Positions 2,101 through 31,276 of a stretch of 40,028 nucleotides of DNA are shown here, piece after piece. Below the pieces are notes generated by a model. The model was given only the letters and a program-made list of their open reading frames with translations, did no database searches and was not told the DNA's origin. The DNA is from Octopus bimaculoides (Eukaryota): the NCBI RefSeq assembly GCF_001194135.2, contig NW_026305254.1, positions 43,086 to 83,113 of the forward strand, in the 5' to 3' direction. How positions within the stretch are numbered: position 1 is the first letter of the stretch; every line of letters starts with the position of its first letter. Made by a program: the position numbers and the translations under genes.

Positions 2101-2758
2101 CTTTTTTTTAAGGTTCTTCTATCTTGTACTTGACTGTGGTCATGCTGGAGCACCGCCTTCGAAGAAATGTTTCAGTCGAATATTATTGTTTTTTTCTCTC
2201 TTTTTTTTTCAAAACCTGGTACATATTGTGTCGGTCTCTTTTGCTGAACCGCTAAGCATCCCTCGTCTCCCCATCCTGCTATCTAAAAGTGAAAATGAAC
2301 ACCTTGCAAATATGAAAGAGACAACTGTCCTAATGTGAACAGAATTGAGGGTTCAAACCATTCTTCTTGCCAGCAATTAAGAATATGAAGACTGTGAAAG
2401 CCCCTTGACCACCAGGAATTATTTCTAAAGTGCATAAAATATGTGGCATATTAGGATACGGCCTAAATTTGGGGGTGAGATGGGGAATTTCAGAAAATTC
2501 ACCAGAGTCCCCTTCAATTCGAAATAACTTCCAAGAAAATGAATATTTTTTAATGAAATGGACTTGTTCTTAAACACCCATGAGTAGGGAACTGTTCTCA
2601 AAAATAACCCTCAATTGTACTTGTGTTACATTTCCCCCTCAGTTACAGCCCCAGGGTGATGCTTATACCATTTGACAATAATGCCAACCTATTAACCAGT
2701 GTAGATATTGGCCAACTCTGTCATGTCTTATTATTATTATCAGGTGTTATGAAACTAA

Positions 2759-2852
2759 ATGGGAACTAGATACACAAAGAAGCAAGCGCTGAGAAAGAAG
2801 CATCTCTTACCTGCATCACTACGCAACAAGATACGAGAATCTACTCTTCAAG
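2759..2852 (+). CDS. PRR19-like coding exon 1 (MGTRYTKKQALRKKHLLPASLRNKIRESTLQ)
   Basis: Acceptor ttatcag at 2743; in-frame TAA directly before ATG 2759; donor CAAG|gtgagg; ends phase 1. Confidence 0.7.
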
Positions 2853-4736
2853 GTGAGGAAAATACGATGATAATAAGAATGGTTTGTGATTGATTTAAAT
2901 AAGAATTAGTATAAGTTCTCTTTGGGGACCCCAAATACCACAAACAACTGTGAAACCTCAAATATCCTGTTGTCTTTTCCCTTTCAATGTTTTTCCCCAG
3001 TTTTTCGAGATCGGCTGAAATCTCCAGGGAAAGGTGGTGCTCTTTTGGTTGGAAACAGCACAAACCAAGCTGAAGACTGTTTGGTGTCCTCGGCACCAAC
3101 AGCGAAAGATAACTCTTCATCCCCTGTTCCATGCTCTGTAGAGGACCCCATACCCCAAGAATCAGTCAATAATTCCGACTCCAGTCTACAGTCAATGGCC
3201 AAGAGGAAACGTGTTCGAGTAAAGAGGAAGAATTTACAGAGAAACCAATATAAGGTTGGTGCTGGAGCTTTTCAGAATTATTTTGACCATTTAGTATATT
3301 CAAATTACTGCTTGAGAAGAAGACCCATTAAGCCGAGAAAAATTGCATTTGTGGTAGATACAGGGGTCACGCGAATGGAGCTGGATTTTCTATGGGGAGC
3401 ATGCCCTTGCTTACCCCCAACCTCAGTTTCTAGATATGAGTGGTCCTGAGACCTCTACCACAATTTTTAAGAAATGTAGTGGAAAACTAGCTCAGAAAGG
3501 CAGGGACGCTACTCTCTGAGACCCCTTTCAGAGCCCCCACCGTTATATCATAACAACAGCAACCATACCTTTATTCATTTGTGTCATTAATTAATTATTT
3601 TCTCATTCTTGTTCTCTTTATTTTCAGAACACTGGATGCTTAAAGAAATACATCTCTGTAAGTGCTCCACTCCCTGTTTTACTTGAGCAATTTTTCAATA
3701 AGTTTACTTCTATATTTGTTGTGTTTCAAAGGGTTTGCATTCTTTCAAGGGGGCTTAAGGGTTTTGCACTGTTTTAAGGACTATCAAGGAGTTTGCAAAG
3801 CTTTAAAGGGTTTCATGGAGTTTACATTGTTTTAATGAGTTTGAGGGGTTTGTAATGTTTTAAGGGGTCTCGAGAAGTTTGCAAACCTTTAAGAGGTTTC
3901 TAGGGGTTTTCATTGTGTTAAGAGCAAGCTGGGTGCTCTTGCAAATGCCAGACACTTTACAGTGTCCCCAGTGCTGTTTGTGATTGAATATTGATCTGGT
4001 TGAATACGATTTCTCTCTTTTCTCAGCAAATGACTAAGATTAACAACATGGTTTCGTGCAACACAGCGTCACGACGGATCAGGTCCCCTGAAAAGAAGAT
4101 CAGCATAATCGCTGAGAATCGAATCACGGTGAATACTTGATCAATACTTTGTTAAGGTTTCATTAATTTGAGTTGTTTAAAATTAACGAGTCACATGTAT
4201 GTGGTTCAGAAGTTGGCCTCTCATCCGCACGTCACAAATGTTAATAATTACACCTGTTTTGAGTACCATTTCAGTTTCTTTTTGTTGTTTTTCCTATATA
4301 CAAGGACCACTTTGTGTCCAATATATACAATGCCCAATGCGTCCTTCCTGTTTTAAGTAGGGCTGTTGTGATTTGAGGGAATTTAGCTGCTATTTCTAGC
4401 AAGTTAAAGTCATTGCATAGTGGCTCCTTTCCTATGTTGGTTCACTCCTTTTGTTTACTGCTGTTGTTGTTGTAATAATTAATCTTGCTGTTGTTCTCTT
4501 CTAGAAATACCTGGGTATCTTCAACAGAGGAAGGAAATCGGAGAGGATTGCACGCGGTAATTATCCGCTTCTCAATTTATTGTTGTTGTTGTTGTTGTTG
4601 TTATTGTTGAGGCAGTGAAGGCAGAATCGTTAGCACACTGGATTAATTGCTAAGTGGTATTTTCTCTGTCTTCATGCTCTGAACTCGGAACTATGTGGTC
4701 AGGAAGCAAGCTTCTTACCACACAGCCACTCCAGCA

Positions 4737-4813
<77 letters not shown>

Positions 4814-7800
4814 GTATGTGTGTGTGTATGTGAGTGTGTGTCTGTGTGTGTGTGTGTGTGTGTGTGTACATGCAAACCCATGTTTGTTTATTTCTGGCCC
4901 TTTCTTTCTTCAGTTTATCCGCCGATACCAAAGTCTGTCCAAGACAAAGCTGACTCTGATCTCAAGAAGATTCTCAACATCACTTCCGACTCACAGGATG
5001 TCATCACCATCACAGAGAGCGATGGCAGTGGCCGGCATGGTTACCATGGTAACAGAGAGATGAGTCAGGGGTGAGTTGATACACATACCTCCACCTCACG
5101 CTTACACATAGAATCACACATACGTACCTTTTAGTCTTTTACTTGTCTGCGGCCATGCTGGGGCAATGCTTTGCAAAATTTTAGTCAAATGAACCAACCC
5201 TGGTACTTACTTTTTTTACTGAACCATTAAGTTGTGGGGATGTAAACATACCAACACCGGTTGCCAAAACAGACTCAGAAGTATGGTGCAGCTTCCCGTC
5301 TGGCCAGCTCCTGTCAAACTGTTCAACCCATGGCAGCATGGAAAGCAGACATAGATACACACATATATATGCACGCGTATATGTATCTATGTAGAAAAGG
5401 GCCTGTTGTCTCAAGTACAATACTCGTCCCTAAATCTAAGGTGATCCATCGGAGACCATCATGTCTTTTTGTATATCTAGAACCTCATTGCCCAATGAGT
5501 CCTTCATTTTCTTCTTTTTAAACAGTAGGATGTCCTTTAGGAGATATTTAGTTGCTATTTCTAACAGGTCTGGCCACCATGTAGAGGCCTCCCTCATTGA
5601 TTCATACATATATCCATAGATAAGAGAGTAGGGTGTGATTTGAGGGAGATTTGGTTGCTATTTCTAGCAGGTCTAGCTACCATGTAGAGGCCTCCCTCAT
5701 TGGCTCATACATATATCCATAGATAAGAGAGTAGGGTGTGATTTGAGGGAGATTTGGCTGCTATTTCTAGCAGTTGAATATCTTGCTTCATGCATTCAAC
5801 TCTTATTCCATTCTTTTGTTGACTTTTCAGTGCCATGACAATCCAGTTTGCCCAGAAAGCCATGACGCCCACCACTGAGGGTGCAACTAATACCTCCAAT
5901 CATTTACCCGAAGAGAAAAATGATTTACCACAGGTAAATACTATAGTTGTTGTTTAACCCTGGGTCAGTCCTGATCCAGGCAGACCAATGACGTTCCACC
6001 TGTAACCACCCCATCTTTTATTCAGGAATAGTGTATCTAGGACTACATTATGCAGTGTGTGTATATATATTTGTGTGTCACAGAATCTCTCAAAACATCA
6101 ATATTTAAGCATTGCAACATGGTGAGCTGTCAGAATCATTACTGCCTTCCAAATGTTCTGAGTTCAAATTCCACCCAGGCCAACTTTACTTTTCATCCTC
6201 TTGGGGTTGACAAAATAAGTACCTGCTTAACACTGGAGTCGATACAATTGATTTACCTCCCTCCCAAAATTGCTGGCTTGGTGCTAAAATTTGAAATCAA
6301 TATTTAGCCCTTTAGCATTTAAAGTGGCCCTCTCCGGCCCAAATATTCTATCTGTTTTATGTTCACCCCTACCCAACAATATGTACCTATTCTTTAGCAA
6401 GACATCTGTTTCTGCCTCTCCGTCACACTCTAACCTTTCGTCATCTGACACAAAACCACCTCCTCCAATGCCCCCTGCCCTCTCAAAGGATCTTTGTGAC
6501 CCTGCCAGTGCTGGTGCCACTTCAAAAGCATCCAGTCTACACTGTGAAGTGGTTGGTGTTTGGAAGGGCATCCAGCTGTAAAAACCTTGCCAAAACTGAC
6601 CTTGCCTGTGCTTGTGCCATGTCAAAAGCCCTCAGTCGACTCTGCAGAGTGGTTGGGGCTGGGAAGGGAATCCAGCCGAAAACCCTATGCTAAAACAGAA
6701 GCCTGGTGCAGTCTTTTAACTAGCCAGCTCCTGTCAAACCATCCAACCCATGCCAGCATGGAAGGCAGACGCTAAACGTTGATGAAGACGACAACACAGG
6801 TATATATATGTATGTATGTTTATTAACCTATCTGCTCTAAATTACAGCAAACACCATACAAAGAAGTTGCCCAAGATCTCCTCTCAACACTCCATGAGAA
6901 AAAGAAACTTTTCAATCAAGGTAAATCAACGCCATGATACTTCAGAGATTATTTACCATTCTGCCAACAGAGTATGCCTGCTATTTCAAGCAGCATTGAA
7001 TTAATATATTTTACATTTAACAGAGTAATCAGAATGCTCTAAACAGTTATACATACATATTCAGACATGTATATAAATAAATATATATGAAAGAAGCATT
7101 GTTTTATATTTCTAGACCTCCGACTCACCATCTCCACCCAACTGTACAACCTTCTGAGGCAAAGGTTAGTGAAAATCTTTTATCTTTATCAAACTTTCCC
7201 ATCAATAGTTAACAGTAGTCCCCGTTTTTAAATATAGCTTACGACAGCAACCCTTACATTTGCAGAACTGGAAAGATTCCCATAAAAGAGCTCTAATTAT
7301 TGTAGCTGTTGTATTAAGGTCATGTGATTATATGGAAGCTCTCTCATGAGTTTACGTGGTCCCTATTTTGAAGGCAGAAGGGAGTTTGTTGAGGAGACAT
7401 TTTTGCTTCTACATTAAGGTCAAGTGACTACATAGAAGCTCTCTCACTGGGTCCTGTGACCCCTAGTGGCTACTTAGAAGTGCACTCACTTGATTACATG
7501 GCCCCTAGCAGCTTCATAAAACTCCCTCACTGATTCATCCGGTCCCTATTTTAAAGCTGATAGGAGTTTTGTTGGGGGTAGAATTCGATTCAGTTGCTAT
7601 GTTAAGCAGCTCAAACATCTCTGTACAAGTTCCCTCATTAGCAGAAAAGGGATTAAAAGTAGATCCGTCATCATTTAATGTCTGCTTTCCATGCTGGCAT
7701 GGGGTGGATGGTTTAACTGAAAAACCGGTAAGCTGGAGAGCTGCACCAGGTTCCAATCTGGCATGGTTTTCTACAGCTGGACACCCTTCTGAATGCCAAC

Positions 7801-8725
7801 CACCCCAAGGGTGTAATGGGTGTTATGTGACACCAGCACTGGCCACGACCACGACTTCACTTGGCCTGACTAACCCTTAAATTTGCAAAACTGGAAGGAT
7901 TCACCTAGAAGCTCTTGTAATTGTGTGTTTGATCCTTATTTTAAAGACGCTATTGAAATTACTGTAAGTTCTGGTGGCTTTGTTGTGATACAACCCCAGG
8001 TTGACCCCGGTTCATATAGGTATCACTGCAATAAATATGATCCACAAATCCAGTCTCCTAGATAAACCGTAATTCCACAAAGTCCACTTTGCCATATTTG
8101 TATGGGTCTGACCCAAGGAAATCTGCTCCATAGAATATTTCCTGACCCAAACAATCTTAGAACATTGACGGTAGTGGTGGGGGAGATGTTTACCTTTTCG
8201 ACTTCATATGTGTCTGTCTGTTTGTCTGTTGCCCTGCCAGCATCCAGCGCAGCCCGGTGTCAAAGCGAGAGACTGCGACAAAGTGCAACAGAACAACCAG
8301 CGAGACAACACCCCCGTCTGCACTCAACAAAGAGAAATCACTGCCATCTTCCACCCAACATGGTAAGTGTAACGGTGTGTGTGTGTGTGGGGGGGGGAAG
8401 AGCCATTGCACAATACACACACACACACATATATATGCATGCATGCACACACACACAGAGCCAATGAGGGAAACCTTTCTGAGTTGGCTACACCTAGAAA
8501 AAGCACAACCTGCTATCTTAAGAAAGAGAATTGAATAATGTAGCTACTCTTTTACTCGTTTCAGTCATTTGACTGTGGCCATGCTGGAGCACCGCCTTTA
8601 GTTGAACAAATTAACTCCAGAACTTATTCTTTTGCAGAACCGCTAAGTTACGGGGACATAAACACACCAACATCGATAGTCAAGCGATGATTGGCAGACA
8701 AACACAGACACGCACAAATATGAAC

Positions 8726-8788
<63 letters not shown>

Positions 8789-11276
8789 AAATCCACTCTC
8801 ACGGTTTTGGTTGACCCAAAGCTATAGTAGAAGACATATCCCAAGGTGCCACATAGTGGGACTGAACCCAGAACCATGTGGTTGGGAAGCAAGCTTCTTA
8901 GCACATGGCCACACCTGTGCCTTACCAAGCAAATCACCTTTTTCTCTTGAATTCCATATATTGGACTGTATTATTTGTTTCTCTGTTGTTATTTATTTAG
9001 GGCACAGTAAAACCCCTGCCCAGAAATCCCCCTGCATTGACCAGATTTTACTGAACGCTTGTCCCCAGGACGATGGCAGATATCTGCTGATGAAAAACGA
9101 CTACGTGATCAAGATCGATGAAAACATGAATGGCAGTAAGAAGAGGATCTATCAGGCCAGCAGCATTTTACCCTCCAGGGACAGACACGAGGATGGCAGC
9201 TCAATGCGTAGCACTGGTAATAACAAGAGTCACTCCTGCTACTTGGACCCCAAGTATGTAAGGACTCAAACCGAATCCTACAAAAGTGTGAAGAGCTCTG
9301 TACCCTGGGACAAAGGGCTGAAGTCAGAGTTTAATGTTCAGAAGATTTGGAAGTCGAAAAAGCTTGTCGCAGACGTCGGTTTGGATTATGAGGTAATTAT
9401 TGTAACGTGTGTCTATGTGTGTGGTTTGGACTATGATATTGTTGGTGTGCGCAGGTGGCCAGTTGGCAGTGTTGTTAGCATGCTGGGTAGAATGTTTGGT
9501 GGTGTTTAGTCCAGTTTTGTGTTCTGAGTTCAAATTCCACTGAAGTCTGCTTTGCCCTTCATCCTTTCGGGGTTGATTAAATAAGTACCAATTAAGCACT
9601 GGGGTTGATTGTAATTGACTTACCCCTCCCCTGAAATCGTTGGCCCTGTGCCAAAATTCAGAATCATCATTATTATTATTATCAAACAATAGTGAACCGG
9701 CAGAATTGTGAGCATGCCAGACATCCTTTTAAGTTGATAAAATAAGTACGAGCTGAGCATTGGGGGGTTGATGTGATCAACTAGTACCCTCAACCCCTAA
9801 ACTGCTAGCCTTGTGCCAAAATTGGAAATCAGTATTGTGTGTCCCAAGATGGTACTTTATTTTACTTTTTATTTTTTACCCCAGTGTGGTCAGAGTTATG
9901 AAGGTATGGAGTCAAGAGAAGGCAGTGGTCACCCTGGACACCAGTGCACAGAGACAGATATTTTCTCTCTCTACCCACAGAAATTCGCAGAAGCAGGCAG
10001 CTACCCAGAGCAGAGTGGCGAGGGAGGCAGCTACCCCTGTCACCTGCACCAACCTACAAAGACAGACAGTTACCCACAGCAGAAATCAGAAGTCAGCAGC
10101 TACCGTTGTCACGTGCACAAGTCTACAGAGGCAGACAGCTACCTACAGCAGTGTACGAAGACAGATGAACACACACATCCCACTCACATAGGGTGTACAG
10201 AGGTAAGCAGCTTCCTGCATTGGTTTGCTAAGGCATGCAGGGATGTAACGAAAAGAAAATTGGACAATGGCTTTGTGGTTTCGAAGCTCTCTTTTACATT
10301 TCATGGTTCCAGGTTCAGTCCCACTGCATGACACCTTGGGCAAGTGGCTTCAGCTATAGCCGCAGGCTGACTGAAGCCTTCTGAGCAGATTTAGTAGATG
10401 GAAACTGAAAGAAGCCCATTGTGTGTGTGTGTGTAAATATATTGGATCAGCCAATACATCTTTCAAACATCACTTCCACAACCATCATTCATTCTTCAGA
10501 GTCCCAGAAAGATGGTTTGTCCCTTCCCCGGCCCACCTAAAAGATCAAGGTGATATCAGGTGGAAAGTAATAGAGCATTCAGGCCCAATATATTAATGGA
10601 AGTGACCATTGCGGAGAGGGCCAAAATCCTCAAGGACTATACTAAACCTGGCGTGTTAAATAGTTGTAAAGAGGTTTTTTCTAAATGTGTCCAATTCAAA
10701 CACTACCTACTGGAAAAAAGGGACCTCCTCGTTTGCTTGTTAGACTTTTCGGGTCTAAAAAAGGGTTGTTTTATCCTTTGGCTCAGGGGAGACAACCCAT
10801 CCTCATTAACACACTTATTGCAGTGCCCTTCAGGTTTTTAAACCCCAGTAAAAGAACTCAACAGACTGGACCTCTAACCCAGACTTTTGCGATACCCTTA
10901 AGGTCAGGAACTTTTCAGCAACCCCCTCGTGTATTTCTGTGTGTATAAGGATTCAGTTGTGTGAACTATAATACATCCATGGGCCTCACTCTGTATAACA
11001 CAAACATGTCTCTTCCTATTGCAGGGGCCTGACTTCCTACAATATCTCGAACAGACCAGCCAAGGGACCATATCACCAGAGAGCATTGCCACGACAGTCA
11101 ACTACCAACTCCCGAAATTAAAATGGAACACCACAATATTCAAGGCTCCCACACCAGATTCAGACTTGTCCCCTTTCTGGCTGTCAGAGCCCTCTCTTCC
11201 CCCTTTACCTACAAAACCCTCTTTAGACAACGTGGTCAGTCCTCCAGGTAAACTCTACCCGAGGAAGCTGTATTGA
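2759..11276 (+). CDS. PRR19: Spliced 13-coding-exon gene, 633 aa, putative PRR19 (proline-rich 19)-like meiotic crossover factor
   Basis: All 12 introns are GT-AG with polypyrimidine tracts, and the phases chain without a stop (1902 nt including TGA). Motifs RVRVKRKNLQRN, KISIIAENRITKYLGIFNRGRKSERIARV, SPFW and terminal SPPGKLYPRKLY* resemble human PRR19 as I recall it ([59 protein letters not shown]). The gene model is well supported; the name is from memory and unverified. Confidence 0.65.
3001..3254 (+). CDS. PRR19-like coding exon 2 (VFRDRLKSP...KRKRVRVKRKNLQRNQYK)
   Basis: Acceptor tttttccccag|, donor AAG|gttggt; phase 1 to 0; part of track ORF 2922..3449. Confidence 0.8.
3628..3657 (+). 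CDS. PRR19-like coding exon 3, 30-nt microexon (NTGCLKKYIS)
   Basis: Long pyrimidine tract ending ttttcag|, donor TCT|gtaagt; phase 0 to 0. Confidence 0.7.
3728..3925. repeat. Degenerate minisatellite, unit about 29-30 bp, about 7 copies
   Basis: Recurrent (a/g)gtttgca...tttaagg...agg units in intron 3. Confidence 0.6.
4027..4128 (+). CDS. PRR19-like coding exon 4 (QMTKINN...KKISIIAENRIT)
   Basis: Acceptor ttctctcttttctcag|, donor ACG|gtgaat; only the phase-0 frame is open. Confidence 0.85.
4505..4556 (+). CDS. PRR19-like coding exon 5 (KYLGIFNRGRKSERIAR)
   Basis: Acceptor ttctcttctag|, donor GCG|gtaatt; phase 0 to 1; carries the core conserved motif. Confidence 0.85.
4914..5070 (+). CDS. 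PRR19-like coding exon 6 (VYPPIPKSVQDKADSDLKKILN...EMSQ)
   Basis: Acceptor tttctttcttcag|, donor GGG|gtgagt; phase 1 to 2; frame of track ORF 4820..5074. Confidence 0.85.
5540..5772. repeat. Tandem duplication with 103-bp period of an interspersed-repeat segment
   Basis: catgtagaggcctccctcattg at 5578 and 5681; tagggtgtgatttgagggagatttgg(t/c)tgctatttctagcag repeated; related sequence near 4358-4400. Confidence 0.8.
5831..5933 (+). CDS. PRR19-like coding exon 7 (GAMTIQFAQK...KNDLPQ)
   Basis: Acceptor gacttttcag|, donor CAG|gtaaat; phase 2 to 0. Confidence 0.8.
6150..6300 (+). mobile_element. SINE-like interspersed repeat (ttctgagttcaaattcc...gactttgcctttcatcc family)
   Basis: Homologous copies at about 9520-9665, 11445-11540, 20385-20560, 20590-20760 and 37530-37590; gagttcaaattcc resembles a Pol III B-box. 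Confidence 0.65.
6848..6920 (+). CDS. PRR19-like coding exon 8 (QTPYKEVAQDLLSTLHEKKKLFNQ)
   Basis: Acceptor aattacag|, donor AAG|gtaaat; phase 0 to 1; amphipathic-helix pattern. Confidence 0.8.
7116..7164 (+). CDS. PRR19-like coding exon 9 (DLRLTISTQLYNLLRQ)
   Basis: Acceptor ttttatatttctag|, donor AAG|gttagt; phase 1 to 2; bridges the phases of exons 8 and 10. Confidence 0.8.
8241..8362 (+). CDS. PRR19-like coding exon 10 (SIQRSPVSKRETATK...PSSTQH)
   Basis: Acceptor gccctgccag|, donor ATG|gtaagt; phase 2 to 1. Confidence 0.8.
8545..8720 (+). mobile_element. SINE-like interspersed repeat (tttcagtcatttgactgtggccatgctggagcaccgcc family)
   Basis: Homologous copies at about 2128-2260, 5130-5260, 14150-14235, 20935-21070, 30285-30470 and 34790-34850, and inverted at about 26780-26915 and 36850-37050. 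Confidence 0.7.
9001..9392 (+). CDS. PRR19-like coding exon 11 (GHSKTPAQKSP...VADVGLDYE)
   Basis: Acceptor atttatttag|, donor GAG|gtaatt; phase 1 to 0; core of track ORF 8811..9509. Confidence 0.85.
9981..10202 (+). CDS. PRR19-like coding exon 12 (KFAEAGSYPEQ...HIGCTE), with internal 69-nt duplication
   Basis: Acceptor ttttctctctctacccacag|, donor GAG|gtaagc; phase 0 to 0; frame of track ORF 9813..10331. Confidence 0.8.
11025..11276 (+). CDS. PRR19-like last coding exon (GPDFLQYL...SPFWLSEPSLPPLP...SPPGKLYPRKLY*)
   Basis: Acceptor tctcttcctattgcag|; phase 0; TGA at 11274-11276; AATAAA about 30 nt downstream. Confidence 0.85.
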   Translation, partial: GPDFLQYLEQTSQGTISPESIATTVNYQLPKLKWNTTIFKAPTPDSDLSPFWLSEPSLPPLPTKPSLDNVVSPPGKLYPRKLY

Positions 11277-11308
11277 TGTTGGCCTGGGGTCTGGGCAGAT
11301 GGTTTGTA

Positions 11309-11314
11309 AATAAA
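11309..11314 (+). terminator. Candidate polyadenylation signal of the PRR19-like gene
   Basis: AATAAA shortly after the stop codon. Confidence 0.35.
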
Positions 11315-11340
11315 TAAGATTTAAATATGTGGTGGATGGT

Positions 11341-11442
11341 GGGCAGATATGGAATGTAGGCGAATATGAAATGTGGGCAAGTACAGAATGTGGACAGATA
11401 TGGAATATTTATAAATATGAAATGTGAGCAAATAAGGAATGT
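11341..11442. repeat. Degenerate 17-bp minisatellite, 6 copies
   Basis: gggcagatatggaatgt / aggcgaatatgaaatgt / gggcaagtacagaatgt / ggacagatatggaatat / ttataaatatgaaatgt / gagcaaataaggaatgt. Confidence 0.75.
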
Positions 11443-12419
11443 GTTTATGTTCTGAGTTCAAATTCCACTGAGGTTGACTTTGCCTTTCATTCTGGTCCCC
11501 CTTCCCAGAAACTGCTGGCTTTGTGCTAAAATGGGAAACCAATATAGATAAACACAGTGGTAGTGCTAAGGGGCACGGCTAGGGTAAATGGTGCCCAGGG
11601 CCTCCACCAAAACGCAGCACATGCATTTTGTGAGGTCAAGAAAGAACACTCATTCGGTCAAGTGGTGCGGATGGCAACAAGCATAACAAACGAAGCCTGC
11701 AAAGCTTTAAAAAATTTTTGTTAATGGCTTAATTAGAAAATAACGGTGGCCAAAATTGCATGGGCCCCGCTTTCCCCACTTAAACACCCCCCCACACACA
11801 TTATATATATGTATATATATTCTTTGAGGAATTTGTTTGATTTGTCTTCTCTTTTTCCTTCCTTCCATCTTCCTCTTTCTTTCATATTTTTGCTATTTCT
11901 CCTCCATCCTCTCTCTCTCTCACTCATTCAGTTAACCCCTAACACACAGACACCCATGTATATTTACACACACACACAAGACACTGCATTAAAAACTTCA
12001 AATTGATTTCTTGACAGTTGTATCTAATCAATAATAAATGTGGATCGTCTTTAATGCATCAGGTTTGATATGGTGTTGTTGTTGCTGTTTAGCCCTAGGC
12101 AGACATATACAGGGTGTTTGGGCTAAATTTGATGCTCTTTTGTGTCTCCAGTTTCCAGAAACAGCTTGAGGTGTTGGAGAGAGTAAAGATTCCAGTCATG
12201 GTCAAGGAAAACTTAGCTGACGTGGAGGACTGGATGCCATCTGAATATTGGCAAAGAGTCACCTGTATTATGGGGGACAGCAGCCTGAAAAAGTTTGGGA
12301 ACCACTGGTTTAGCTGACATTTTCTGGGTTTTAAAAATACTTTTAGTTTGCGATGGGATGTTGTTTTCTTTCCCTTTAATGCAAACTGTCAAATTTAGCC
12401 AAAATACCCTGTACATATA

Positions 12420-14301: not shown

Positions 14302-16117
14302 GATTACCAATAAACTGCACTTCATATTCAAGGCTCTGGTGAAGCTGTAATATATTACTCAAGTACTCAGCTCTGAGTCCACAGCATCTTATAGATAGCA
14401 GAAAAAGCTGTAAGCCAAAGAAGTTCATAAGACATCTATATATATATATATATATAAATATATATATAATTTAAGTGTGTATCTACACATGTGATGCCTT
14501 AGGAAAAAGTGAACTCGTCAACTCCAGGGACTAAAAAGGAACAAGAACCACAGCATGGATCCCTAGAGATTTAAGATCAGGGTCTGTCAGCATGGTGAAA
14601 CCCTGCCGTCTGTGTGTGCATGTGACAAGAGGTCAACATAGAAGGGCACCCTGGCCACCCTCCAGCTCTAAGCTGGGTCTTGAAGCAGCGACAATCCAAT
14701 TCAAAGGCACACAGACCCAATTCACTTCTTTTGTATTAGTGAGGTGTCAGTTTTGATGGAGGGGAGGGGAGGTGTGTGAGTGTGAACACTTTTACAGGTC
14801 CCAGTTCCTGAACCGTGACCGTGCTGGAGCACTGCGTGCCACTGTCCATCTAATTTTACCCCAACCCTTGGTTCAGAGCTGGTATTCGTTTAATCAAATT
14901 GATATATTACAGACGTAACTTCAGCAAACACAAAAAAATATGTGTGTATATATATATATATAAATATAAACACACATACACATATTTATATACATACATA
15001 CACATATGTATTACACACATCTCGCTATATACATCTACAATCATTTTTACTCTGTGTGCTTGTGTGTGTGTGTGTATATATGTATATAGTAATCTGTGCC
15101 TATATATATGTGTATGTAAATAAGAGATAGCAATGAGTGTGTATACATATGTAGGTGTGTGTATGTGTAAATAATATATAGTAATGCGTGTGTGTACATA
15201 TAGATATAATATGGGTGTGTGTGTGTTGATAAGNNNNNNNNNNNNNNNNNNNNNNNNNNNNNNNNNNNNNNNNNNNNNNNNNNNNNNNNNNNNNNNNNNN
15301 NNNNNNNNNNNNNNNNNNNNNNNNNNNNNNNNNNNNNNNNNNNNNNNNNNNNNNNNNNNNNNNNNNNNNNNNNNNNNNNNNNNNNNNNNNNNNNNNNNNN
15401 NNNNNNNNNNNNNNNNNNNNNNNNNNNNNNNNNNNNNNNNNNNNNNNNNNNNNNNNNNNNNNNNNNNNNNNNNNNNNNNNNNNNNNNNNNNNNNNNNNNN
15501 NNNNNNNNNNNNNNNNNNNNNNNNNNNNNNNNNNNNNNNNNNNNNNNNNNNNNNNNNNNNNNNNNNNNNNNNNNNNNNNNNNNNNNNNNNNNNNNNNNNN
15601 NNNNNNNNNNNNNNNNNNNNNNNNNNNNNNNNNNNNNNNNNNNNNNNNNNNNNNNNNNNNNNNNNNNNNNNNNNNNNNNNNNNNNNNNNNNNNNNNNNNN
15701 NNNNNNNNNNNNNNNNNNNNNNNNNNNNNNNNNNNNNNNNNNNNNNNNNNNNNNNNNNNNNNNNNNNNNNNNNNNNNNNNNNNNNNNNNNNNNNNNNNNN
15801 NNNNNNNNNNNNNNNNNNNNNNNNNNNNNNNNNNNNNNNNNNNNNNNNNNNNNNNNNNNNNNNNNNNNNNNNNNNNNNNNNNNNNNNNNNNNNNNNNNNN
15901 NNNNNNNNNNNNNNNNNNNNNNNNNNNNNNNNNNNNNNNNNNNNNNNNNNNNNNNNNNNNNNNNNNNNNNNNNNNNNNNNNNNNNNNNNNNNNNNNNNNN
16001 NNNNNNNNNNNNNNNNNNNNNNNNNNNNNNNNNNNNNNNNNNNNNNNNNNNNNNNNNNNNNNNNNNNNNNNNNNNNNNNNAAAGATATTACAAATATATA
16101 TAAATATATATATATGT

Positions 16118-19093: not shown

Positions 19094-22000
19094 NNNNNNN
19101 NNNNNNNNNNNNNNNNNNNNNNNNNNNNNNNNNNNNNNNNNNNNNNNNNNNNNNNNNNNNNNNNNNNNNNNNNNNNNNNNNNNNNNNNNNNNNNNNNNNN
19201 NNNNNNNNNNNNNNNNNNNNNNNNNNNNNNNNNNNNNNNNNNNNNNNNNNNNNNNNNNNNNNNNNNNNNNNNNNNNNNNNNNNNNNNNNNNNNNNNNNNN
19301 NNNNNNNNNNNNNNNNNNNNNNNNNNNNNNNNNNNNNNNNNNNNNNNNNNNNNNNNNNNNNNNNNNNNNNNNNNNNNNNNNNNNNNNNNNNNNNNNNNNN
19401 NNNNNNNNNNNNNNNNNNNNNNNNNNNNNNNNNNNNNNNNNNNNNNNNNNNNNNNNNNNNNNNNNNNNNNNNNNNNNNNNNNNNNNNNNNNNNNNNNNNN
19501 NNNNNNNNNNNNNNNNNNNNNNNNNNNNNNNNNNNNNNNNNNNNNNNNNNNNNNNNNNNNNNNNNNNNNNNNNNNNNNNNNNNNNNNNNNNNNNNNNNNN
19601 NNNNNNNNNNNNNNNNNNNNNNNNNNNNNNNNNNNNNNNNNNNNNNNNNNNNNNNNNNNNNNNNNNNNNNNNNNNNNNNNNNNNNNNNNNNNNNNNNNNN
19701 NNNNNNNNNNNNNNNNNNNNNNNNNNNNNNNNNNNNNNNNNNNNNNNNNNNNNNNNNNNNNNNNNNNNNNNNNNNNNNNNNNNNNNNNNNNNNNNNNNNN
19801 NNNNNNNNNNNNNNNNNNNNNNNNNNNNNNNNNNNNNNNNNNNNNNNNNNNNNNNNNNNNNNNNNNNNNNNNNNNNNNNNNNNNNNNNNNNNNNNNNNNN
19901 NNNNNNNNNNNNNNNNNNNNNNNNNNNNNNNNNNNNNNNNNNNNNNNNNNNNNNNNNNNNNNNNNNNNNNNNNNNNNNNNNNNNNNNNNNNATTTTAAAA
20001 AAACATAACCCACTTCATTATTATTATTAATAATAATAATAATAATAATAGTAGAAAACAAAAAACTACAATCCCTTAACATTTGAAATTGCAAGAATTT
20101 GGAATATGGAAATTGTAAAGGTCTTTTGCTTGTAAGAATTGGTTGATTGGGAAAAGTAAGGAAAGGTACAGAGAAACGGTTGTGTAGAGATTCTAGAGAA
20201 AGTTTGCCTCTTCGGAAAACCAGGAAAGATTATCAGGAGGGTTCTAAGCACTATTGTGGATGTCTAAGGTTACCTAGGTTGTAACCTGCTACCCACATAA
20301 ATTCTACCAGGAATTAGAACAAACCCAAGTTAAAATCAATAATAATAATAATAATAATAATCCTTTCTAATATAGGCACAAGGCCTGAAATTTTTGGGAG
20401 GGAGAGGGGACTAGTTGACTACATCATCCCCAGTTCTCAAATGGTACTTAATTTATTGACCCCATAAGGATGAAAAGCAAAGTAGATTTTGGCAAAATTT
20501 GAACTCAGAACCTAGCGGCAGATGAAATACTGCTAAGCTTTTCGCCTGGCAAACTATTCTGCCAGCTCACCACCTTCATAATAATCTTTTCCTCCTAAAA
20601 GCACAAAGCCTGAAATTTTGAGGGAGGGGGGACTAGTTGATTACATCGACCTCAGTGCTTCACTGGCACTTAATTTATTGACCCCTAAAGAGATGAAAAA
20701 CAAAGTCAACCTCGGCAGAATTTGAACTCAAGAACGTAGGCATTTTGCCCAGCATGCTAACGAATCCACCAGTTCACCACTTTATGTAATAATAATAATA
20801 ATAATAATAATATCTTATTGAAAATGCCTATAGGAAACCCTTAATGATTACTTTGAACAACAATAAACCTAAGAAATATGAATATAAAAATAAAAGAAAG
20901 ACTCTTTTCCCCCCCAGATTAATTCTACTTAACTCTTTTCTTGTTTCAGCCACTTGACTGTGGCCATGCTGGAACACCGCCTTTAGTCGAACAAATTGAC
21001 TCCAAGACTTATTCTTTGTAAACCTAGTGCTTATTCTATCGGTCTCTTTTGCTGAACCAAGATGTAAACAAACATACACACACACATGTAATATATACGA
21101 CAGGCTTCTTTTAGTTTGTCTACTAAATCTGCTCACAAGGCTTTGGTCGGCCTGAGGCTATAGTAGAGAACACTTGTCCTCGGTGAAACTAGATAGTTGG
21201 AAAGCAAGCTCCTTACCATGCAGCCACTCCTTCACTCCATAGAAATTAAATATAAAACTGTAGGAGTTATAGAGAACCTATGTGTGTGTGTGTGTGTGTG
21301 CGTGTGTACTATTAAATATTTTGAAATCCTGAATAATTTTTTTTGAATGCATTGAATAAAGAAACCTGGTTACATTATCAATTCTATTCCGTTATTATTG
21401 TTGTTTGTTTTGATCAATGCAAGCCCCAGTTTTTGTGGTTTATTTCATCTTTTGATTTGCATAGTCCTCAGTGTCTTGGGCACACAACGCAAAAAAAAAA
21501 AAAACTATTATTATTATTACTAGTATTAAATAGAGTGACTATAGCCCTATTTTTTATTTTATTTTATTAAGAAAGAACAATGCAGGTAGCTAACGACAAG
21601 ATATTGTATCTTTACCAATTCTCATTAGTTCAGTCAACAGAAGACAGCAAGATCACCTTACACATGACACTATACTATATATATATATATATATATANNN
21701 NNNNNNNNNNNNNNNNNNNNNNNNNNNNNNNNNNNNNNNNNNNNNNNNNNNNNNNNNNNNNNNNNNNNNNNNNNNNNNNNNNNNNNNNNNNNNNNNNNNN
21801 NNNNNNNNNNNNNNNNNNNNNNNNNNNNNNNNNNNNNNNNNNNNNNNNNNNNNNNNNNNNNNNNNNNNNNNNNNNNNNNNNNNNNNNNNNNNNNNNNNNN
21901 NNNNNNNNNNNNNNNNNNNNNNNNNNNNNNNNNNNNNNNNNNNNNNNNNNNNNNNNNNNNNNNNNNNNNNNNNNNNNNNNNNNNNNNNNNNNNNNNNNNN

Positions 22001-23098
22001 NNNNNNNNNNNNNNNNNNNNNNNNNNNNNNNNNNNNNNNNNNNNNNNNNNNNNNNNNNNNNNNNNNNNNNNNNNNNNNNNNNNNNNNNNNNNNNNNNNNN
22101 NNNNNNNNNNNNNNNNNNNNNNNNNNNNNNNNNNNNNNNNNNNNNNNNNNNNNNNNNNNNNNNNNNNNNNNNNNNNNNNNNNNNNNNNNNNNNNNNNNNN
22201 NNNNNNNNNNNNNNNNNNNNNNNNNNNNNNTTTAAGTCTATCAGCTGTGAGATTTACCAGATTTTTCCCCTTTTTTCCCAAATTCATCATCATCGTTTTA
22301 ACGTCCGCTTTCCATGCTAGCATGGGTTGGACAATTTGACTGAGGACTGGTGAACCAGATGGCTACACCAGGCTCCAATCTGATTTGGCAGAGTTTCTAC
22401 AGCTGGATGCCTTTCCTAACGCCAACCACTCAGAGAGTGTAGTGGGTGCTTTTACGTGTCACCCGCACGAAGGCCAGTCAGGCGGTACTGGCAACGGCGA
22501 CGCTCAAAATGGTGTCTTTTATGTGCCACCCGCACAAGCCAGTCCAGGGGCACTGGCAACGATCTCACTCGAAAATCCTATATATACATATTTTTCATTA
22601 TTTATAAATTTTATGATTATCATTTCTTAAAATTGATTTCTTATTGGAGAGTCTTTGTTGAAGTGTGTCCATAGTAATGTAAATGTAAAACACAAATATA
22701 CCAGCTCCATACTTCAGTAGGAAACGAGTACCTACCATTTACATACACAGACATATATATATATACATATAAACCTATAAATTAGATAAACAGTCCTAAT
22801 TTAGTTATTTCTCTGCAGAATGAAAAACTGATGAAGAACCTTAACTGATTTTCGAGTCTTATTGAACTCTTATCAGAGGTAGATACATCAGTTTGATCAA
22901 TCCTAGAGAAAGAAGCAGCCATTCATAAACGCACACGCACGTATACAAATGGAGATTTGATAAAAAAAGAAAAGTGATCAATTTTGAAAAATACAAAAAC
23001 AAGAAGTCGTTGAGTTTTAATTAGCTAAGAAAAATTAATTAGCTAGGATGCTAAATGACGAAATATCTAATCGTAGTCATACATACATACGTACATAC

Positions 23099-24704: not shown

Positions 24705-25195
24705 TTAGTATAAAAGATGAGCTACAGCAAATATTCTGCTCAATACCACAGATTTGCTTGTCAGTCGTTTGACCTTAACCAGCTGAGCATGTCCCTCGGT
24801 GGCTGACGATATGTGCATCTCTATCACGAGCAGAAGTAGTGGGGGAGCATCAGAGCCATGTGTTGAGAGGAATTCTTTGGGGTTTGAATAATTTTACCTC
24901 TGGAAACATGGGTGTTTCGTTCAACATCCTTAAACAACCCTTATTCAGGGACCTTTTGAGTGGGACGGGCTAATCGACCTGAAGGAAATTCTAATCGGGC
25001 CGCACCTGCAAGGTCATGCACTGTTTAACTTGGTGTGAAGTCACCATGTCACGCACATATGGTTGTGAGGCATGTGCCTGGTGTACCCTGATCAGACGGG
25101 TAGTCACGATGGGTATACTGGGCTTCGTATATTTTACCCCAGGGTCACTTTGATGACATGTGCTGCTCTCTCACTCAATAATAATAATAGTAATG
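24705..25195. mobile_element. Interspersed repeat of about 480 bp ending at an (AAT)n tract
   Basis: Higher-GC block bounded by (AAT)n tracts; recognised as a common repeat type in such genomes; family not determined. Confidence 0.45.
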
Positions 25196-25352
25196 ATCAA
25201 ATAGTACGAAAATACTTAAAAAATCAAAAAGTGAAAATGCAATGGAGAAAAATGAAAAGAACATACATACAATGTATGCAATAGAAATACATGTGGATAC
25301 ACATACACACAATGTACACAAAAGGAAAGGAAAATATGATGGTGGTAGATAC

Positions 25353-25523
25353 CTGCTGACGTAGCGGCGTCTGGGGTAGCGTCTGGAGTCGTCACAGTCA
25401 CGGAAGAAGTGTCCCTTGCGTCCGCACTGGTAGCAACGTAGGTTGGGGTCAAACACACGCCGGCGCCTCCCCCTTGTGCGGGGCCGTGCCAATGAGACGC
25501 GGATCCGACCACCACTCAACAAT
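25353..25523 (-). CDS. SRSF7-like coding exon 2: end of RRM plus CCHC zinc knuckle
   Basis: Acceptor ctctccag|, donor CAG|gtatct; LLSGGRIRVSLARPRTRGRRRRVFDPNLRCYQCGRKGHFFRDC (CX2CX4HX4C; the FDPN.RCY.CG.KGH...DC pattern is SRSF7/9G8-type); phase 2 to 2. Confidence 0.92.
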
Positions 25524-26076
25524 CTGGAGAGGCAACGTCAATGCAGCCATCAAATTGAATTGGTAAATGGAGAGACGTGACCATCAAGATGGAGTGAAGA
25601 TTCGGCAAGAGGTTTTGAAAGAAAAAAAGGAAAGAAAGAAAAGAAAAAAAATGACAAAATTACTAATGACGAAGTTTTTTTTTTTAATAATCAACAAATC
25701 AACATAAATGAAGACATGGCAGCATGATTAAGAAGCTTGTCTTGCAATCTCGTGATCCTGGGTTAATCCCAGACTACAGATTACTGAATTATCAGAAAGG
25801 GTGGGACGATTTGTGAGCTCCTCGTACTGCAGATTTCTGCTGGTGCTTCAGGACAAAAATTCACATGAGTCTCAGCTCGCACAGCAAATTACTCGTACAA
25901 TGGGGCACTTATACTGTAAGGTCCTACTGTATGTGACTGTCGATAGCAGATATGAAGGGGATCCTGAAGATGTAGCTCAGAGGAGAGGGAGAGACAAGTG
26001 GGGGGTGGGGGTGATGCCCACACTGACACACTCCCCCCCCACACACACACACACGAAAACAGTAAACAGCCCTTAC

Positions 26077-26351
26077 TTGCCATCCATCTCTTTGATGGCT
26101 GCATCAGCATCTTCGCGATATTTATAAACGATGAAGGCAAAGCAAGGGGGGCTCTTGGCCACCCACACCTCCAGCAGCTTGCCAAACTTCTCAAACACGC
26201 ACTCCAGCTCCCTCTTTGAGGGATCCTCGCCCAAGTCAGCCACGTGGACCCGGACTCCGTCTTCTGAAGGGCTGCGACTCCGACTACGGCTGTGGCTGTA
26301 ACTGTAGCTGTACCAACGCCTCTCCTGTGACCGGGAGCGTGAACGGCCCAT
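26077..26351 (-). CDS. SRSF7/SRSF3-family SR protein, coding exon 1: N-terminal RS stretch plus RRM
   Basis: Acceptor tttcatttgcag| then CCACCATGG (perfect Kozak, ATG at 26351); VRVHVADLG...ELECVFEKFGKLLEVWVAKSPPCFAFIVY...DADAAIKEMDG; donor AA|gtaagg. Confidence 0.92.
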
Positions 26352-28427
26352 GGTGGCTGCAAATGAAAGAAAAGCGACAAAAATTATTGCAACAGAAAAT
26401 TTTTTCCAAAAATATGTAAAAAGCTTGCTTCCCAACCACATGATTTCAAGTTCAGTCCCACTGCATGGCACCATAGTGTCTTCTGCAACAACCTCAGGCT
26501 GACCAGAGCTTTGTGAGTAAATTTGGTAGACGGAAACTAGAAGAATCCCATCACATATATATACACACATCATATATTGGCATGGATGAGTGGTAAGAAG
26601 TTTGCTTCTGAAGCACATACTTCTTGGCTCTGTCCCATTGCATGGCACCTTAGGCAAGTGTCTTCTACCATAGCCCCAGGCTGACCACAACCTGGAGAGT
26701 TGATTTGATATAGAGGGAAACTGAAAGAAGCACGTCCTGTACATATATATCTATGTGCGTGTTCCTTTATGTCTCTGTGCCCAACCACTGCTTGACAACT
26801 GGTGTTGGTGTGTTTACATCCCTGTAACTTAGCAGTACCGGGGATGATTCATTAAACTAAAAATTCTCTTAGGCAGTGCTCCAGCATGGTCCCCAGTCAA
26901 ATGACTGAAACAAATGAAAGGTAACATTGTTTAGTTGTTGGCCAGTCCTGATGGAGTCTTGTAGTATAGCACTGGGCTAACCAAAGCCTGGTGAGTGGAC
27001 CTGGCAGGTGGAAACTGAAAGGAGTCTACTGGTTATACAAATATAGGTGAAAGTTAATGACAGCAAGGGCATCCAGTTGTTGAAAAATATGCCTCAACGC
27101 ATTCAATCCAATCCATGCAAGCATGGAAAAGTGGATGTCGAAACAATGCCGGTGATGATTCACAATAGAAGATTAAATGCGAACTCAGTCATGTTTGAAA
27201 GATAAACAAATTTATGCAACAGAAATTATAAATCACATTCTATAGACCTCAAACTTACATGTCTGTTTCCCTGTTGATTAGTTTTCCTGTTTATGGTAAG
27301 CTGGAAAGAGAAAGCAGTGGCTGTGTTGAGAGAGATGCANNNNNNNNNNNNNNNNNNNNNNNNNNNNNNNNNNNNNNNNNNNNNNNNNNNNNNNNNNNNN
27401 NNNNNNNNNNNNNNNNNNNNNNNNNNNNNNNNNNNNNNNNNNNNNNNNNNNNNNNNNNNNNNNNNNNNNNNNNNNNNNNNNNNNNNNNNNNNNNNNNNNN
27501 NNNNNNNNNNNNNNNNNNNNNNNNNNNNNNNNNNNNNNNNNNNNNNNNNNNNNNNNNNNNNNNNNNNNGTGGAGTCTCGTGGGGTGGGGGTGGGGGCTAC
27601 GGATGTGGACTGGGTGCCAGAGAGGAGGCAGTTTGGGAACTGCTGATCTAAGAGGATAGGTACGCTGAGTGTTACAACTGGTCGGACCGTCGGGTTCCAA
27701 GTCCACAGCTGAGGCTGGATCTGGGGATCCGTATTAGGGTTCCGTTATACCTGGTATTATATGAGAAGAAAGAGCCAATCGAAGGCAGAACAAATATCTC
27801 AAGTCATCTAGAATAATCCAATTAGGGTAAGTGTTACAGCAGGGATAACCCGTCATCAGAGACAAGGTATGAAGGTTTTAGAAATATATAAGGGAAAAGT
27901 TACAGTTTACAAAGAATAAAATCTATTCAGTTTATAAGGAATACAAGTCATATAATGAACATGCATATGGTTTACACGCGTGCGCCTGTCGAAGTGTATA
28001 TATATGTATATATATATATAACGAGCTTATATCATCAGCGTATTTCCAAGGAGTTTCCACTCCACGACGTGTCTACATAAGTGTATATATCTCTACGCGC
28101 ACACAGGCATATATATACACACATATAAAAGCACAGACGCAAGGATGGTTATATACATATCAAGGTCTAAATGTCTTGACATACTTTCTCGCCGATCAAG
28201 TAAATTAGTTTTTCCGATTTCGTGCAGATTTTCATAATTGAAAATCCTAGATTAATTAATTACCACAGGTCTGCATTAATTAATATATAATTAAAATGAA
28301 ATTGTTTTATAAAAGAATTACAATTAACAATCCTCTAAATACCAACGTAGGAAAAGAGGCAAAAGAAACTATACACACACATCTATACACGTACACACGT
28401 ATATATATATATATACATATACACGTA

Positions 28428-28461
<34 letters not shown>

Positions 28462-28978
28462 CACACAAACATCTATATATACTTCGTATGTGTATTTCGT
28501 GTGCAAGATTCTTGATGTGGATACGTGTGTTTAATTGTATCTATATATACGTACACACGCATATATATACATATACACGTGTGTATATATACATACACAC
28601 ACCAATCATCGAAGGACACATCTTCTACATATACGTAAATATACATTATATATACGTGCACACATATACACTAACAGATATTCGTATATGTATATATGCA
28701 TACACATCCCATCAACATAGACACATCAATTATATCCATGCATACATTNNNNNNNNNNNNNNNNNNNNNNNNNNNNNNNNNNNNNNNNNNNNNNNNNNNN
28801 NNNNNNNNNNNNNNNNNNNNNNNNNNNNNNNNNNNNNNNNNNNNNNNNNNNNNNNNNNNNNNNNNNNNNNNNNNNNNNNNNNNNNNNNNNNNNNNNNNNN
28901 NNNNNNNNNNNNNNNNNNNNNNNNNNNNNNNNNNNNNNNNNNNNNNNNNNNNNNNNNNNNNNNNNNNNNNNNNNNNNN

Positions 28979-30717: not shown

Positions 30718-31276
30718 ATGGGACGTGGAAAAGGCCTTAACAAGGAAGAGAAATCTATCATCATGAAGGAAAGTACCAAAGGCACCTCTCTTCATGTCAT
30801 TGCGGAGAAGTTAGGCCGTCATGTGGACACGGTTAGACGATTCCTGAAGGACCCTTCACCAAGGAAGAAACGATCCGATTGTGGGACCTCCAAAACTGTG
30901 ACAGCTAGGGATTTAAGGAATATTGGCCACAAGTTACGTGAGAAACCTGGACAAACAAGCAAAGACATTTTCGCTGCCTCCGGACTCCCTCATGTACCGA
31001 AAACCACCAGAAATCGCATCCTTGGGACCATGGCTTCTGTTGTTCAAGAACCCCTGAAACTGCCTCCTTTAATGCCACATCGAAAATCTTTGGTCCATCA
31101 TTAAACAAGATGTTTATGCCGATGGATGCCAATTTACATCGAAAGATGTCTTATGGGTGACCATCAAAACTGCCACAGAGGCAATCCAACCTGCTACTAT
31201 TAAGAAATTGACAGATTCCATGATTAATAAGGTTTTTGAAGTTATCCGTTGAAACGGCACTCATGTGGCTAAATAA
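30718..31276 (+). pseudogene. Internally deleted Tc1/Tc3-like transposase
   Basis: N-terminal paired HTH-like region (MGRGKGL...IAEKLGRHVDTVRRFL...SGLPHVPKTTRNRIL) joined out of frame at about 31079 to the C-terminus IENLWSIIKQDVYADG.QFTSKD.LW...IKKLTDSM...FEVIR*NG; central DDE core missing; internal stop. Confidence 0.85.

Follow-up and report, generated by a model that had tools for sequence, protein, structure and literature searches.

A gene that is hidden from a stop-to-stop list of open reading frames (ORFs) raises the question of what it encodes. The stretch of DNA analysed here, which we call the window, comprises 40,028 nucleotides (nt) of Octopus bimaculoides (RefSeq assembly GCF_001194135.2, contig NW_026305254.1, positions 43,086 to 83,113 of the forward strand), and the gene in question lies at 2759-11276 on the plus strand. 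An earlier note, made from the sequence alone, had described it as a hidden gene of 13 exons encoding a diverged relative of PRR19, which in mammals acts together with CNTD1 in the maturation of class I crossovers (PMC7303132). Our analysis shows that 2759-11276 (+) is the coding part of LOC106873055, a gene under purifying selection whose product is very probably the cephalopod member of the PRR19 family, with a CNTD1-docking mechanism likely by homology. Four conserved regions (CR) have been described in human PRR19: the arginine-rich CR1 (R19-A32), CR2 (L61-S91), CR3 (V144-V191) and CR4 (S344-Y356), which forms the C-terminus (PMC7303132). The same names are used for the octopus protein below.

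We rebuilt the exon model, exon by exon, from the letters of window 2500-11500. The rebuilt gene has 13 exons that join into a single frame of 1998 nt, or 665 codons plus the stop. All 12 introns run from GT to AG, the acceptors are pyrimidine-rich, and in-frame stops lie immediately 5' of the ATG. The exons and the features that they carry are as follows.

2759-2852 (+): exon 1, 94 nt; start codon at 2759; the product begins MGTRY... and takes in the first half of the conserved N-terminal helix
3001-3254 (+): exon 2, 254 nt; remainder of the N-terminal block, VFRDRLKSPGKGGALLV, and CR1
3195-3254 (+): CR1, the basic block KRKRVRVKRKNLQRN, in exon 2
3628-3657 (+): exon 3, a 30-nt micro-exon
4027-4128 (+): exon 4, 102 nt; start of CR2, KKISIIAENRIT, at 4084-4128
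4505-4556 (+): exon 5, 52 nt; core of CR2, KYLGIFNRGRKSERIAR
4914-5070 (+): exon 6, 157 nt; end of CR2 and the conserved helix SVQDKADSDLKKIL at 4931-4981
5831-5933 (+): exon 7, 103 nt; disordered linker, with the start of CR3 at 5925
6848-6920 (+): exon 8, 73 nt; first helix of CR3, PYKEVAQDLLSTLHEKKKLFNQ
7116-7164 (+): exon 9, 49 nt; second helix of CR3, DLRLTISTQLYNLLRQ
8241-8362 (+): exon 10, 122 nt; disordered, rich in Ser, Thr and Pro
9001-9392 (+): exon 11, 392 nt; mostly disordered, with a weakly conserved D-x-x-x-LL-x-x-ND block and a predicted helix
9885-10202 (+): exon 12, 318 nt; an alternative internal acceptor gives a start at 9981 and 222 nt
11025-11276 (+): exon 13, 252 nt including the stop TGA at 11274-11276
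11025-11054, 11151-11180 and 11235-11273 (+): contents of exon 13, namely DFLQYLEQ, PDSDLSPFW and, at the extreme C-terminus, CR4, SPPGKLYPRKLY
11309-11314 (+): AATAAA, a candidate polyadenylation signal 33 nt 3' of the stop, by sequence reading only

CR2 and CR3 are each split across three exons. A second AATAAA lies about 757 nt 3' of the stop codon, and the gene call in Octopus vulgaris runs about 1.2 kb beyond the stop. Use of the internal acceptor of exon 12 (AG at 9979-9980) drops 32 codons (window 9885-9980) and yields a form of 633 amino acids. This form matches the Octopus bimaculoides record RefSeq XP_014775757.1 ("uncharacterized protein LOC106873055 isoform X2") exactly, while the O. 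vulgaris annotation has the long form of exon 12. The 13 exons with canonical splice sites in a single frame that the earlier note had proposed thus agree with the rebuilt model, the seven small exon lengths that it listed are all right, and every peptide block that it quoted was found (residues 102-113, 150-178, 270-302, 631-634 and 654-665 of the 665-residue form). The length of 633 residues that it gave is correct for the acceptor at 9981, but the longest joined frame encodes 665. Likewise, the gene is hidden from the ORF list but not from RefSeq, which annotates it as LOC106873055; the label given there, "uncharacterized protein LOC106873055", is what had been expected of automated annotation.

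Comparison with O. vulgaris shows that the 13-exon model is real, far beyond chance. The orthologue, annotated independently on a chromosome-scale contig, is 660 amino acids long and 91% identical. All 13 exons are collinear at the O. vulgaris locus with their AG/GT sites kept, and 12 of the 13 have the same length, exon 7 differing by a 1-nt indel. Identity within exons is 88-100%, against 75-92% in the 150-nt intron flanks; the 30-nt exon 3 is 100% identical with flanks at 79%, and the 49-nt exon 9 is 98% identical with flanks at 75%. Nei-Gojobori counting between the two species gave 0.168 synonymous substitutions per synonymous site (dS) and 0.037 nonsynonymous substitutions per nonsynonymous site (dN), a dN/dS of 0.22. 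The codon differences in CR2 and CR3 are all synonymous (10/10), and CR2 alone, where the count is 6/6, carries no amino-acid change. A pseudogene or a chance ORF is ruled out by the conservation of the exons in O. vulgaris together with the dN/dS.

The same comparison yielded several side observations. The exon 7 indel (window 5831-5933, O. vulgaris locus 27457-27560) falls in a disordered linker that is poorly conserved. In the O. vulgaris model an acceptor 16 nt downstream preserves the frame, and the protein is 5 amino acids shorter as a result. All 12 introns are longer in O. vulgaris, by a factor of 2-16 (148 vs 1531, 357 vs 5361 and 195 vs 3164 nt, for example), and a coding span of 8.5 kb in the window, with introns within 2853-11024, compares with 33 kb in O. 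vulgaris (locus 10095-42880). The gene region of the window contains no N, and the blastn blocks suggest clean insertions. The difference reflects either a gain of numerous repeat insertions in O. vulgaris or the loss of repeats from the O. bimaculoides assembly. Short interspersed nuclear element (SINE)-like copies with TTCTGAGTTCAAATTCCAC recur many times in the O. vulgaris locus, some of them in tandem. In the window, repeats are found mainly in introns (5524-5773, 6497-6696, 4739-4867, 8727-8786, and near 6158, 9520 and 11450), and comprise a 103-bp unit present 2.4 times, a 100-bp unit present twice, and (TA)n/(TG)n microsatellites.

Relatives of the octopus protein were gathered by an exhaustive HMMER search, in which a profile of the two octopus proteins was compared with 1.84 billion representative proteins at E<=1e-3. 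This search returned 20 proteins, the window's own product among them, and included the cuttlefish Acanthosepion (E 1.6e-24; also called Sepia), the scallop Pecten maximus (E 2.4e-19), the annelid Capitella teleta (ELT87451.1, E 1.4e-6) and the sea urchin Strongylocentrotus purpuratus (E 3.5e-4). Further matches came from the molluscs Gigantopelta, Batillaria, Mytilus, Patella, Haliotis, Liolophura and Saccostrea, the nemertean Lineus, the hemichordate Ptychodera and the echinoderms Anneissia, Patiria, Apostichopus and Asterias. The 17 matches with an organism name are thus molluscs, a nemertean, an annelid, a hemichordate and echinoderms, all of them lophotrochozoan or ambulacrarian, and two more come from read assemblies without a name. 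Every named relative is labelled "uncharacterized" or "hypothetical". No ecdysozoan and no vertebrate appeared among the named matches at E<=1e-3, an absence that could also stem from the sensitivity of the search. A word-indexed protein search with the octopus protein matched the two octopus proteins only, and the same kind of search with the 21-sequence family alignment again found only these two and missed the alignment's own members, so it was uninformative. When a profile was built from 19 of the relatives without the octopus sequences, it matched octopus residues 7-665 with 226.7 bits (E 7.8e-62, Z=1.8e9).

The family alignment shows a shared series of blocks. The N-terminal helix R-E-x-[IV]-L-x-V-F-R, followed by SPGGGGA[IL]LV, corresponds to the conserved N-terminal block at octopus residues 19-50, and most family members begin with MG[KR]. 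It is followed by a basic block, K-R-R-K-[ST]-R-A-E-R-N, and by [IL]-I-T-Q-N-R-L-T-x-x-L-G-L-F-N-x-G-K-K-S-x-x-I-x-R. Next come a helix with DLKKIL at its end, the block P-P-x-x-E-I-A-x-x-L...F-P-G-R-D...E-L-x-K-x-M, the block D-I-L-D-Y-L-D, and the C-terminal block D-S-D-x-S-P-x-W...K-P-x-x-x-x-P-S-P-P-x-K-L-[YF]-P-R-R-L-Y. Octopus CR1 (residues 99-113) aligns with the family's KrrKsraeRNk. Octopus CR2 spans residues 150-178, KISIIAENRITKYLGIFNRGRKSERIARV, in which R158, T160, G164, N167, K171, S172 and R177 are invariant or nearly so across the family. In CR3 the octopods read LFNQD where the family has F-P-G-R-D and human PRR19 has FPRRN. The C-terminal P-x-[basic]-[LMV]-[YF] occurs in 15 of the 21 family members and in human PRR19. 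One gene model, that of Acanthosepion pharaonis, lacks the N-terminal block and passes directly from the initial half of CR2 (ISLITQSRVT) to CR3 (NAPIKEIA); these gaps are probably small exons that were skipped or missed in the annotation.

We then asked whether this family is that of vertebrate PRR19. PRR19 homologues have been reported "in most metazoans except Ecdysozoa" (Bondarieva et al. 2020, PMC7303132), and the range of our named hits fits that distribution, which is weak evidence. In that study the non-vertebrate proteins were found with a hidden Markov model (HMM) of CR2-CR3 and follow-up BLAST; they came from scallop (A0A210QF54), lancelet, Lingula, "other molluscs", S. purpuratus, Capitella (ELT87451.1) and a coral, and the Capitella, scallop and S. 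purpuratus proteins are listed as homologues with CR1-4 (PMC7303132). Because ELT87451.1, which is named there, is a match to our octopus profile, the octopus protein belongs to the family that these authors call PRR19.

The sequence models point in the same direction. The earlier note had proposed a profile search with the CR2 region and the C-terminus. For octopus residues 85-215 the top Pfam match is indeed PF15455, Pro-rich_19 (14.8 bits, E 0.016, profile positions 8-95), although below threshold, whereas the C-terminal fragment, a block too short for HMMER, gave no Pfam match. The Haliotis member matches the same model with E 1.2e-4 and 21.9 bits (residues 82-169 to profile 15-95), and the Capitella member reaches only 9.6 bits although it is a published member of the PRR19 family. 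All three matches are in register with CR1 and CR2, and all lie below the curated gathering cut-off of 27 bits. That score is an operational threshold of a vertebrate-seeded model and does not define the wider family. Because the octopus score falls below this vertebrate-centred cut-off, we place the gene in the wider metazoan PRR19 family and not among the Pfam-certified Pro-rich_19 domain proteins.

For direct comparison we used a stand-in sequence of human PRR19 that is not a database record and was checked indirectly. It has 356 residues, agrees with the published CR boundaries at 8 of 8 residues (PMC7303132) and scores 678 bits across the whole Pfam Pro-rich_19 model; an exact look-up did not find its exact string in the protein collection, and a word-indexed search with the human fragments quoted in the earlier note gave two candidates, none of them scored. 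The invertebrate profile that includes octopus matched this sequence with 15.8 bits (p 3e-7, single target), against a maximum of 4.4 bits in 2000 shuffles, and the octopus-free invertebrate profile matched it with 11.9 bits (p 5e-6), against 3.4 bits in 2000 shuffles. With hhalign, the family profile aligned to CR1 and CR2 with a probability of 94.7% (P 6.1e-8). The proposal of a diverged lophotrochozoan PRR19-family gene is therefore borne out in that the family profile reaches both the human PRR19 stand-in and Pfam Pro-rich_19 on CR1-CR2, in register. The likeness of octopus and human proteins that had been noticed by eye is real when it is traced through intermediate sequences by profiles, but it is not significant pairwise. 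Membership of the octopus gene in the PRR19 family is, as judged from sequence, supported at profile level only.

The pairing of human TPFW with octopus SPFW, also proposed in the earlier note, fell away. The human TPFW lies at about residue 213, some 140 residues from the end, and the octopus SPFW is far nearer the C-terminus. As a homologous pair the two are probably wrong, and, judged by position relative to the end of the protein, human L-D-W at 323-325 is the likelier counterpart: the spacing from W to the C-terminus is 32 residues both in the invertebrate D-S-D-x-S-P-x-W block and in the human L-D-W of the stand-in sequence.

The structure of the protein was predicted with AlphaFold2 on the 660-residue O. 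vulgaris protein with the family alignment, and helix positions are given in O. vulgaris numbering. The mean predicted local distance difference test score (pLDDT) was 49.9, and 434 of 660 residues scored below 50. Helices were predicted with confidence at 19-38 in the N-terminal block, at 184-197 (DLKKIL; block-mean pLDDT 82-91), at 263-281 and 285-302 in CR3, and at 365-383 in exon 11. The model thus predicts intrinsic disorder over most of the protein and, at CR3, a pair of helices. A sequence search of the PDB with the octopus protein gave chance-level matches only. In composition the protein is rich in Ser, Lys and Thr overall, and its only Pro-rich part is the C-terminal 35 residues.

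How such a protein might work is suggested by studies of its counterparts. The part of mouse PRR19 that interacts with CNTD1 in yeast two-hybrid assays is CR3 with its surroundings, and both proteins co-localise with CDK2 at crossover sites (PMC7303132). PRR19 has also been predicted to put two helices into a groove specific to cyclins of the CNTD1/COSA-1 type (bioRxiv 2026, PMC13192651). By homology with mouse PRR19, the octopus protein would be expressed in meiosis, bind CNTD1 and have a meiotic function. Its conserved regions follow one another as in the rest of the family: a basic CR1, probably a patch for nuclear localisation (import) or for contact with nucleic acid (DNA); CR2, I-I-A-E-N-R-I-T-x-x-L-G-I-F-N-x-G-R-K-S; the CR3 helices; and CR4, ending ...LYPRKLY. 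The CR3 helix pair would dock the cyclin-like CNTD1/COSA-1 orthologue, the complex with CNTD1, together with CDK2, would gather at crossover-designated recombination sites in pachytene, and there it would promote maturation of class I crossovers. Because AlphaFold2 places a helix pair at CR3, mouse CR3 binds CNTD1, and a two-helix groove has been predicted, a disordered adaptor that docks through CR3 is the best-supported mechanism. Apart from PMC7303132, our literature search found no paper on this locus or on either PRR19 or CNTD1 in cephalopods.

Several observations weigh against placing the octopus protein with PRR19. The full-length protein has no Pfam match at E<=10, and the scores of the invertebrate members against Pro-rich_19 (21.9 bits for Haliotis, 14.8 for the octopus fragment, 9.6 for Capitella) are all below 27 bits. 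The relatives were gathered with the octopus protein as the seed, and the human sequence is a stand-in that may differ from UniProt A6NJB7 at some positions. With that sequence, direct octopus-human phmmer was not significant (E 1), and CR2 alone gave p 0.057. CR3 is the next hhalign alignment and is collinear (human 139-184), but at P 0.19 and only 3-4 bits it is not significant alone, while CR4 matches in its terminal motif only, with a negative HMMER domain score for a block too short for HMMER. The octopus protein is also nearly twice as long as the human one (665 vs 356 amino acids) and has 6.9% Pro where the human stand-in has 18.3%. These differences, the sub-threshold Pfam scores and the lack of pairwise significance are what would be expected if the octopus protein belonged to a disordered family restricted to lophotrochozoans and ambulacrarians, whose likeness to PRR19 had arisen by convergence of short linear motifs (the basic patch, the ITQxRLT-like peptide and the C-terminal RLY). 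We regard this as highly improbable. The profile-level match of CR1 and CR2 is both significant and collinear (hhalign P 6e-8; HMMER 12-16 bits against at most 4.4 in 2000 shuffles), CR3 and CR4 follow in the same order with CR4 at the extreme C-terminus in octopus and human, and the W-to-C-terminus spacing of 32 residues is common to both. Moreover, an independent HMM search that set out from vertebrates found proteins of scallop, lancelet and brachiopod (PMC7303132).

A different reading accepts the protein as a true PRR19 orthologue but holds that its function has diverged or is not restricted to the control of meiotic crossovers, for example that it is a general nuclear disordered scaffold whose main activity is carried by invertebrate-specific modules. 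In its favour, blocks that are strongly conserved among invertebrates (the N-terminal helix, the DLKKIL helix and DFLQYLEQ) are missing from human PRR19, and since human CR1 begins at residue 19, the N-terminal block would not fit ahead of it. The octopod CR3 has, in addition, lost the F-P-G-R-D signature of the family. Nevertheless, CR2 and CR3 are the most constrained regions between the two Octopus species, with synonymous changes only, the CR3 helix pair is kept in the AlphaFold2 model, and the family is distributed as reported for PRR19, ecdysozoans being absent from the named matches. We therefore consider a diverged function unlikely, though less so than convergence, and favour a PRR19-family protein that would dock CNTD1.

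At least three blocks, at octopus residues 19-50, 184-200 and 583-592, are conserved in the invertebrate PRR19-family proteins and absent from the human one. They consist of the amphipathic N-terminal helix with SPGGGGALLV, the helix that DLKKIL closes, and D[IF]L[DE]YLD; a confident helix is predicted for each of the first two. These modules are not mentioned in the 2020 description of PRR19 (PMC7303132), and we consider them the only mildly new point of this analysis. Because the lophotrochozoan and ambulacrarian members have them in common, ancestral PRR19 may have been a larger scaffold than the mammalian protein, a proposal to which we give rather less than even credence. If it is true, the extra modules could dock further pro-crossover partners that mammals have lost or moved to other proteins.

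Set beside known systems, the octopus protein resembles mammalian PRR19 (human A6NJB7, mouse B2RW88; PF15455) in the order of its conserved regions, the basic CR1, the CR2 pattern (ITQxRL..GLFN...KS...R), the predicted helical CR3, a CR4 whose motif at the very C-terminus ends in [RK]-L-Y (human ...SFPPMRLY, octopus ...LYPRKLY), and its largely disordered predicted character. Apart from the differences in length (665 vs 356 amino acids) and Pro content (6.9% vs 18.3%), the octopus gene has 13 coding exons and its protein has the extra N-terminal helix with SPGKGGALLV, the DLKKIL helix and the DFLQYLEQ block. With the published invertebrate homologues (Capitella teleta ELT87451.1, Mizuhopecten yessoensis A0A210QF54, Lingula A0A1S3HP68 and S. 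purpuratus W4Z018; PMC7303132), octopus has in common CR1-4 and the extra N-terminal and DLKKIL blocks, but the octopod CR3 is more diverged (LFNQD vs FPGRD). The sequence similarity of the octopus protein to this group is direct and significant, as seen in the Capitella and S. purpuratus matches and, for scallop, in that of Pecten maximus. The alignment shown in PMC7303132 has no cephalopod, and "Octopus" was not found in its supplementary text. C. elegans COSA-2 (PMC13192651), a partner of the cyclin-like COSA-1, is, like the octopus protein, disordered with two adjacent helices, by which it is predicted to bind a CNTD1/COSA-1-type cyclin. Its authors found no confident sequence homology between COSA-2 and PRR19 (PMC13192651), and no ecdysozoan was among the named octopus matches. 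The likeness lies in the mode of working and not in family.

The novelty that the earlier note had implied did not stand, given that the gene is already in RefSeq and that PRR19 from scallop and "other molluscs" was published in 2020 (PMC7303132). For the same reasons the gain is one of naming and not of discovery, and it is incremental because PRR19 across non-ecdysozoan metazoans, molluscs included, was already part of that publication. It provides a functional name and a testable hypothesis for the cephalopod gene and for its relatives in cuttlefish, gastropods, bivalves, a chiton, a nemertean, a hemichordate and echinoderms, and extends the sampled range of PRR19 to coleoid cephalopods, in which meiosis has been little studied. 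The conserved CR3 helix pair also offers a handle on whether the PRR19-CNTD1 pairing is ancient.

Elsewhere in the window, a neighbouring gene with exons at 25175-26744 (-) carries an RRM_1 domain at 26073-26744 (E 1.2e-9), a CCHC zinc knuckle at 25175-25522 and Arg/Ser-rich tracts; from these features it looks like a splicing factor of the SRSF7/9G8 type. Two transposon copies lie downstream of the PRR19-family gene: an uninterrupted ORF of 353 amino acids at 32148-33209 (+) for a mariner/Mos1-type transposase (HTH_48 with Transposase_1/DDE_3), and an ORF of 128 amino acids at 30718-31104 (+) with the helix-turn-helix of a Tc3-type transposase. A long exon-like ORF at 39238-39993 (-) contains Kelch repeats (Kelch_4, with a weak match to the attractin/LZTR1 beta-propeller) and a 10-N gap at 39271-39280. 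Assembly gaps, seen as runs of N, are located at 1499-1954, 15234-16080, 19094-19991, 21698-22230, 27340-27568 and 28749-28978; they are flanked by microsatellite-rich sequence of low GC content and are the source of spurious long X-filled entries in the ORF list.

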